Of a stretch of DNA of 64,000 nucleotides, positions 13,519-14,944 are shown in pieces. The notes under the pieces are model-generated. The model worked only from the letters and a program-made list of their open reading frames with translations. It was not told the DNA's origin and did no database searches. Origin of the DNA: Monocercomonoides exilis PA203 (lineage: Eukaryota; Protista; Preaxostyla); NCBI GenBank assembly GCA_001643675.2, contig LSRY02000024.1, positions 496,001 to 560,000 of the forward strand, in the 5' to 3' direction. Numbering within the stretch: the first letter of the stretch is position 1; each line of letters starts with the position of its first letter. The translations under genes and the position numbers were made by a program.

Positions 13519-14944
13519 ATGAATCAAGTGATTGCAACAATGCTACCACCACATATGAGCAAAGAGGAAGTTCATGTTTGATTTTTTTCCCTAGTCATTT
13601 TTAATTTGCATTTTTGTTTTGGTATTCTTTCATTTTTAAGAAAATTTTTAGCCGATTTGGACTAATAACCGATTATAAGTTTACTGGTGTTGGAAGTGGA
13701 GCGCCATTTGGAACGGCTTGCATTACATATCAAAATCCTTCATCTGCTTGCAAAGCAATTGAATTAGACGAAACAATGATGGATGGAAGCAAAATACGTG
13801 TTTATACTCCTTCTCCATCTGGAATAATCCTTGGGAAAAAGCAAACAATTGTAGACGAAACAATGGATATTCTAAACAGAATTAAAGGCAAAGGGCTACT
13901 TTAAGGGTACCTAAAAAATTTTAAATTAGCTTTATGAAAAGGCTAAATGTTTCCAATTGAACTTTCATCAACACTCTTTGGTGTTGACAATATGTTTTAT
14001 TAATCATCGAACTTTTTTAGGGTTTTCGTTCTCAAAAACAACTGACCCCTAATTGAAATTTTGAATTTCTTTTTTGAAAAGTTAATTAAATAACAATAAA
14101 AAGACATTTTTAGGTTTATAAATTTGAATATTTGTGCTATTTGCAATTGTTAGGGTTGATAATAACTCGATTCAAGCACTGATATGAAGTTTGAAAAAAG
14201 TCTCGTAAAACTTAAGATTTGAATAAAAAAACATTCAATCATTTTCAGTTTTGATCAATTGATTATTATAAACCTAATATACTTTTAATATCTCTCCATT
14301 GCATTTTTTTAGCTATTTATTCATAAATTTAACGAAAAAATCGGGTACCCTTAAAGTAGCATCTTGCCGAATTAAAGTTCACAGCGTTGATTTTGTATCA
14401 TCTGTTTGCACTTGTACCCATTTGAATTTAAGAAAATTTTTTATCATTCATTCATTCTTTTTTATTTTATCAGGCAGCAAGCAAATTTGGTGCAAATCCA
14501 CAACCAAGGCAAGTTGCTACTGCAACTTCTCAGCAAGGAATTCCCACAGGTTCATCTGTTTCTCAACAAACTCACACTTGTTCATATTATCCTTCAACTG
14601 TTCCACAGTCTTTTACACCTCCAACTACGATGATAACTCCACCAACTATTTATGGTCCAATTCCAATTCAACAATTTTCAACCCCAGCTTTTATTCCTGT
14701 TTCTGCTCCTGCACCTGCTCCGGCCCCAGCTCCAGTTGCGGCTTCAGCTCCTTCATTCCCTTATCCTTTACAAACGAACAAAACCAACGATCAGAGTTAT
14801 TGCAATCAATTTACACAAGATAAGACCCCGGCTGGATATGTTCAGACTCCTCTATATTATCAGCCAACATCATTACCAGAACCTTTTTCCTCTTCTTCAT
14901 TTGCAACACCATATTCTACACAATCTGATATAGAAAAGTCTTAA
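13519..14944 (+). CDS. RRM-domain protein with Pro/Ser/Thr/Gln-rich C-terminus; exons 13519-13575, 13641-13887, 14378-14394, 14474-14944
   Basis: RRM-like sequence LPPHMSKEEVHKIFSRFG...GTACITYQNPSSACKAIELDETMMDGSKIRV. GT-AG introns 13576-13640 and 14395-14473. All exons are in frame if 13888-14377 is spliced as a GC-AG intron. Confidence 0.75.
13887..14368. mobile_element. 482-bp non-autonomous DNA transposon: 25-bp TIRs (22/25 match, GG...CC termini) and 8-bp TSD GAATTAAA
   Basis: Left TIR ggcaaagggctactttaagggtacc; right TIR reverse complement ggcaagatgctactttaagggtacc. TSD copies at 13879-13886 and 14369-14376. Removing the element plus one TSD restores ...DILNRIKVHSVDF... Confidence 0.9.

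Follow-up and report, generated by a model that had tools for sequence, protein, structure and literature searches.

The 64,000-nucleotide stretch of forward-strand DNA analyzed here (the window; contig 19, 496001-560000) carries a single-copy RRM gene of Monocercomonoides exilis that is interrupted by a 482-bp element. Exon 1 of this gene (13519-13575) starts with the ATG at 13519 and comprises 19 codons. It is followed by intron 1 (13576-13640, 65 nt, GTTTGA...AAG), a GT..AG intron whose splicing is confirmed by an RNA contig joining 13575 to 13641. Exon 2 begins at 13641 within an open reading frame spanning 13614-13904 and extends to the insertion point at 13886, where its frame is interrupted after codon 101. 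Exons 1 and 2 together encode a complete RRM domain (Pfam PF00076 RRM_1, E 1e-09, residues 9-72 of the 106-aa product), and the insertion point lies 29 codons past this domain. Downstream of the element, the original remainder of exon 2 (14377-14403, GTT CAC AGC GTT GAT TTT GTA TCA TCT) is followed by a predicted intron 2 of 70 nt (14404-14473, GTTTGC...TTTTATCAG), taken from the published gene model, and by the last exon (14474-14944). The latter consists of 156 codons plus stop, encodes a P/Q/S/T-rich low-complexity tail in which no Pfam family was detected, and is now severed from the RRM.

The exons were searched one by one against protein records. The proteins encoded in the window match the M. 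exilis models MONOS_10963 and MONOS_10964 at 100% identity, and the same exon-wise searches for orthologs or an empty site returned M. exilis models only. MONOS_10963 (106 aa) is composed of exon 1, whose residues form its N-terminus, exon 2, and the residues GKGLL appended by the element, and it ends with ...NRIKGKGLL at the element-borne stop codon. MONOS_10964 (188 aa), which is matched by the last exon at 100% identity, has its start codon, an ATG at 14184, within the element. Its model includes two putative introns, 14189-14312 and 14404-14473, and reads ...VHSVDFVSS|AASK. A joined protein of about 266 aa, comprising RRM and tail, was not recorded in the searched range of 86-273 aa.

Anatomy of the inserted element

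The element occupies 13887-14368 on the forward strand and is flanked by two copies of a perfect 8-bp target site duplication (TSD), GAATTAAA, at 13879-13886 and 14369-14376. It is bounded by terminal inverted repeats (TIRs) of 25 nt, GGCAAAGGGCTACTTTAAGGGTACC on the left (13887-13911) and GGTACCCTTAAAGTAGCATCTTGCC on the right (14344-14368), the latter with 11 exact copies in the genome. The arms are complementary at 22 of 25 positions (88%), and the expected count of their 17-nt core by chance in the window is 0.04. The direct repeat GAATTAAAG, found at 13879-13887 and 14369-14377, corresponds to the perfect TSD plus one G. This ninth base is the element's own first base at 13887 and a host base at 14377, and the two are equal by coincidence. 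The repeat coordinates given in the initial annotation of this DNA, namely, a 482-bp element with 25-nt TIRs (22/25) and a perfect 8-bp TSD inside the RRM gene, were thus confirmed, as was the stop codon introduced at 13902. The latter is a TAA (13902-13904) in the frame of exon 2 (GGC AAA GGG CTA CTT TAA) and coincides with the annotated stop of MONOS_10963.

Within the 482-bp interior we found no ORF longer than 48 aa and, using ARAGORN, no tRNA; among Rfam families, just snoRNA models were matched, with scores far under the gathering cut-offs. The motifs AAATAA and AATAAA, both reported as poly(A) signals for M. exilis (PMC8767320), are present at 14088-14100 and conserved in the consensus of the element family. 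They are candidate premature polyadenylation signals. Three TTAGGG/TTAGGT boxes (14014-14024, 14107-14117, and 14147-14157) are likewise conserved in the family consensus. TTAGGG/TTAGGT is the telomere repeat unit of M. exilis, and the boxes in the element occur without an accompanying tRNA-like unit. The family also conserves a donor of consensus type, GTTTGA (14189), and a T-rich acceptor (T7-AG, 14312).

The element family and its autonomous partner

The search for related sequences covered the whole genome (82.3 Mb, 101 contigs). As anticipated in the initial annotation, it revealed further copies, at least 40 of which were scored among 74 candidates, with identities of 79-98% and nearly all of full length. 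Of 29 distinct sampled copies, 22 retain both the GGCA...GCC termini and a TSD of 8 bp whose two copies differ at no more than one position, and the TSDs of these 22 copies are 78% A+T, without a consensus. The closest relative of the window copy is a copy termed L002, with 98.3% identity and 8 differences, and identity to the family consensus amounts to about 92%; the window copy therefore belongs to a young sub-lineage. Two further members, L013 (G000:C80:1829067-1829552, plus strand) and L014 (1831016-1831501, minus strand), are identical, lie in inverse orientation to each other, and are separated by about 1.5 kb. Since their 20-nt flanks are identical on both sides, they apparently derive from one inverted duplication and not from two insertions. 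In another copy, L032 (G000:C25:1121021-1129583), two nested insertions, one of about 5.3 kb and one of about 2.7 kb, break the element into three segments; the larger insertion contains a 614-aa ORF with DUF5906 and VapE-like (primase/helicase-type) domains.

Searching the genome with the TIRs only, we detected TIR pairs also at other spacings, and an autonomous partner with the same TIRs, which the initial annotation had suggested looking for, was found. This partner (L033:556-2122; G000:C25:722055-723621) is a 1,567-bp element whose TIRs are identical or nearly identical to those of the short element and which carries the perfect TSD ATTTTTTA on both sides. Its uninterrupted ORF (L033:739-1914, 392 aa) matches PF12762 DDE_Tnp_IS1595, the ISXO2/IS1595-type transposase domain, with E 3.6e-23 and 82.7 bits versus a cut-off of 27. 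Among the matches listed, no other copy of its lineage is intact, and stops are present in four relatives with 77-93% identity.

Because it shares its TIRs with this IS1595-type partner, we classify the 482-bp element, on sequence grounds, as a non-autonomous Merlin (IS1595/IS1016-like) MITE. The Merlin/IS1016-like class favored in the initial annotation is in accord with this domain match and with the 8-bp TSDs. Like Merlin elements, the partner combines an IS1595-type DDE transposase with 8-bp TSDs and short TIRs, and, as in Merlin MITEs, similarity between the non-autonomous copies and the autonomous element is confined to the ends. We see no essential difference from known Merlin MITEs. 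The Merlin superfamily, reportedly treated by Feschotte in 2004, comprises transposons and MITEs that are eukaryotic relatives of bacterial IS1016/IS1595.

A genome search with the Merlin transposase of the partner gave 1029 first-look candidates, and the 105 that were scored produced 106 matches, all passing. Open frames are present in many of these matches, at 37-49% identity (105 of 1029 candidates scored), which suggests that M. exilis harbors a very large and varied set of Merlin elements. Recent mobility of the MITE family is probable, and a single intact source of transposase is present for it. Neither the 482-bp family nor the 1,567-bp partner has a name in the genome papers on M. exilis that were searched, and the terms "merlin" and "mite" do not occur in PMC8767320.

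RNA across the insertion

Transcription of the locus was assessed in Logan contigs, not raw reads, of four metatranscriptome libraries from one study; such contigs are without strand and without true ends, and rare variants are dropped from them. One contig (X1 record 1) joins 13575 to 13641, skipping the 65 nt of intron 1, and then proceeds unbroken through the left junction of the element and the premature stop to 14058. The left junction is also crossed by contigs of three more libraries (13684-14012, 13701-14049, and 13706-14006), and four contigs (14276-14722, 14313-14935, 14313-14820, and 14300-14728) begin inside the element and extend over the right junction into the last exon. Except for two letters in one contig (X3 record 7), all of them are 100% identical to the locus. 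A spliced joint 13887/14378 (...AGAATTAAAG|TTCACAGC...) was not present in the contigs of the four RNA libraries. Depth in the flanking intergenic bins was zero in all four runs, making genomic DNA carry-over unlikely. The dominant RNA keeps the element.

The only stretch without any RNA contig coverage is 14059-14133, which contains the AAATAA/AATAAA motifs. As this stretch is uncovered, we infer, and do not directly observe, one RNA spanning the whole element. Most sense transcripts may end within 14059-14133, and the RNA on the right-hand side would then represent read-through or antisense transcription. Contig ends within a multi-copy repeat are, however, expected from assembly alone. In the contigs of all four libraries, predicted intron 2 (14404-14473) is unspliced, whereas intron 1 is spliced, even though the donor of intron 2, GTTTGC, scores 4.4 bits, its acceptor is also good, and both fit the consensus described below. 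The initial annotation had counted on a normal intron downstream of the element; it is retained in every RNA contig covering it. We also considered the T7-AG at 14312 as an internal acceptor, which was suggested by two contigs starting at 14313. This position is crossed unspliced by the contigs 14276-14722 and 14300-14728, and the contig ends at 14313 lie in sequence shared with L002-like copies, for which reason they were rejected as evidence of splicing.

The arrangement of the contigs bears on the possibility that the insertion split the gene into two expressed units. In this scenario, the RRM unit would end in the element, and the P/Q-rich tail would be encoded by MONOS_10964, with a start codon at 14184 and transcription from an element-borne promoter. 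The existence of the two published models, the division of the RNA contigs into a left group (ends at 14006-14058) and a right group (starts at 14276-14313), and the poly(A)-type motifs within the uncovered gap are in line with such a fission. However, the frame of MONOS_10964 requires both introns, 14189-14312 and 14404-14473, and the contigs are unspliced at the first donor (14134-14295), at the first acceptor (14276-14722 and 14300-14728), and across the entire second intron. It follows that the annotated 188-aa product is not encoded by the dominant RNA, and we regard the start of the MONOS_10964 model as a prediction artifact. Since, in addition, the grouping of contig ends is what assembly of a multi-copy repeat would produce, we consider gene fission unlikely.

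Splice signals and the possibility of a nascent intron

The initial annotation had proposed that the element acts as an introner, spliced out without a trace as a GC-AG intron. The underlying arithmetic is correct: removing the 490 nt from 13888 to 14377 restores AGA ATT AAA GTT CAC, the sequence before the insertion. A further part of this proposal, a 17-nt exon downstream of the element, holds insofar as the reading frame continues through it, but it depends on the weaker donor GTATCA (14395, exon end 14394). The published model and the consensus favor the donor GTTTGC at 14404, which leaves a 27-nt remainder of exon 2 that is also in frame.

The 5' splice signal of M. exilis was derived from 11 introns, comprising introns of chaperonin (PF00118) genes delineated by profile continuity and the RNA-confirmed intron 1 of the RRM gene. 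Of these 11 introns, 10 are from chaperonin paralogs; despite the small sample, the signal is sharp. The donor consensus is G|GTTTG, with T at +2 in 11/11, T at +3 in 10/11, T at +4 in 10/11, and G at +5 in 8/11 introns. Splice matrices built from the window by ORF joining yielded first coding-sequence artifacts and then 17 noisy loci, and they were dropped. The candidate donor G|GCAAAG at 13888, considered usable in the initial annotation, mismatches the consensus at +2, +3, +4, and +5 and scores -10.1 bits; 90% of the GT/GC sites in the window score equal or higher. The TIR in the opposite orientation would offer G|GCAAGA as a donor, with mismatches at +2, +3, and +4. The candidate acceptor TTAAAG is acceptable and resembles a real acceptor, ATTAAAG, in locus L047. 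For M. exilis, a "ubiquity of canonical GT-AG" has been described (PMC6759080).

Traceless removal as a GC-AG intron requires a TSD ending in A that is followed by a host G. This A|G configuration occurs in 2 of the 22 intact copies, with two or three expected by chance according to a rough estimate from base composition, and in the opposite orientation in none of the 22. When the element and one TSD were removed in silico, a protein-like frame (242 codons) was restored at the window locus only (1/29 copies), and the next-longest spans across the junction in the other 28 sampled copies were not protein-like; this test was based on ORFs without gene annotation, and it could overlook copies flanked by very short exons. 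The predicted enrichment of exonic copies with an AG at the TSD end was therefore not borne out: the configuration is at chance level, and no other sampled copy lies in a protein-like ORF.

Introners have been described in Micromonas and Aureococcus and in the lineages surveyed in PMC9860276 and PMC12130899, and one of these surveys required at least four similar copies as introns of unrelated genes (PMC9860276). The element resembles them in being a short DNA transposon with TIRs and a TSD in a coding exon, and, on paper, in having one element-derived splice site and a second formed by TSD plus host sequence. In contrast to introners, it is unspliced in the RNA at hand, although rare isoforms are invisible to contigs, and its donor deviates from the host consensus. 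Moreover, none of the other 28 sampled copies was found in an exon or as an intron of an unrelated gene, and the target-site configuration does not exceed chance. Neither of the two surveys mentions Monocercomonoides, metamonads, or Merlin (PMC9860276, PMC12130899).

On balance, a nascent introner, in which a minority of transcripts would be spliced from G|GC at 13888 to the AG at 14376-14377, with 490 nt taken out and some full-length protein made, appears very unlikely. The exact restoration of the pre-insertion sequence, the acceptable acceptor, the intact downstream ORF, and the possibility that rare isoforms escaped the contigs speak for it. Against it stand the lack of the joint in the contigs of four libraries, the donor score of -10.1 bits in a genome with ubiquitous GT-AG introns (PMC6759080), the retention in all covering contigs of the downstream intron, whose splicing would also be needed, and the chance-level A|G configuration without other exonic copies in the sample. 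Furthermore, the contigs are unbroken at 13887 and at 14378, the positions at which a second path of appreciable size would tend to interrupt them. Both junctions are retained in four libraries, in one case on a contig with spliced intron 1, and transcripts retaining the element, which the initial annotation had itself named as evidence against its proposal, make up the dominant RNA.

Discussion

We propose that a young Merlin MITE copy broke the RRM gene, that it is transcribed with this gene and not removed, and that the protein is truncated as a result; the combined evidence makes this account very probable. The 482-bp copy would have entered exon 2 by cut-and-paste transposition, which would have generated the 8-bp TSD, and since then it would have been transcribed as part of the gene. 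As G|GCAAAG is unlike G|GTTTG, the spliceosome would ignore the 5' junction, and with the element retained, translation would stop at the TAA at 13902. The presumed product is a protein of 106 aa in which the RRM is intact and the P/Q-rich tail of about 165 aa is missing. Transcripts may end at the AAATAA/AATAAA motifs of the element. That a GC-AG intron can be sketched here on paper would be an accident of the target site, where a TSD with a terminal A happens to be followed by a host G. Given that the insertion is young, the intact frame of 156 codons in the last exon is expected and is uninformative either way.

The alternative that the element is an assembly artifact, or a somatic or rare allele absent from the site in most cells, is extremely unlikely, and nothing was found in its favor. 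Both junctions are found with 100% identity in RNA of four libraries that postdate the assembly by years, the TSD is perfect, and the consecutive tags MONOS_10963 and MONOS_10964 suggest that even the first annotation contained the split.

Insertion of the Merlin MITE explains the two odd neighboring models MONOS_10963 and MONOS_10964. The situation is similar to gene truncation by exonic transposable elements, in that the element is kept in the mRNA, a stop is located five codons inside it, and annotation splits the gene. It differs from those exonic truncations in which a poly(A) site of the element is used, as use of AAATAA/AATAAA is only presumed here. The event is an ordinary recent gene-breaking insertion, and the MITE family is not built for intron making.

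M. exilis is an intron-rich, mitochondrion-less oxymonad, in agreement with the intron-rich metamonad host assumed in the initial annotation, and the origin of its lineage-specific introns is an open question (PMC6759080). If a low-abundance isoform were spliced with GC (13888) as donor and AG (14377) as acceptor, the locus would present a Merlin MITE at the first step toward a spliceosomal intron in a metamonad, a prospect that we judge to be highly improbable. An intron-making transposon in M. exilis would, if true, be a real finding; the evidence presented here says otherwise. The donor rule G|GTTTG can be used to screen the M. exilis genome for other introners that exist on paper.
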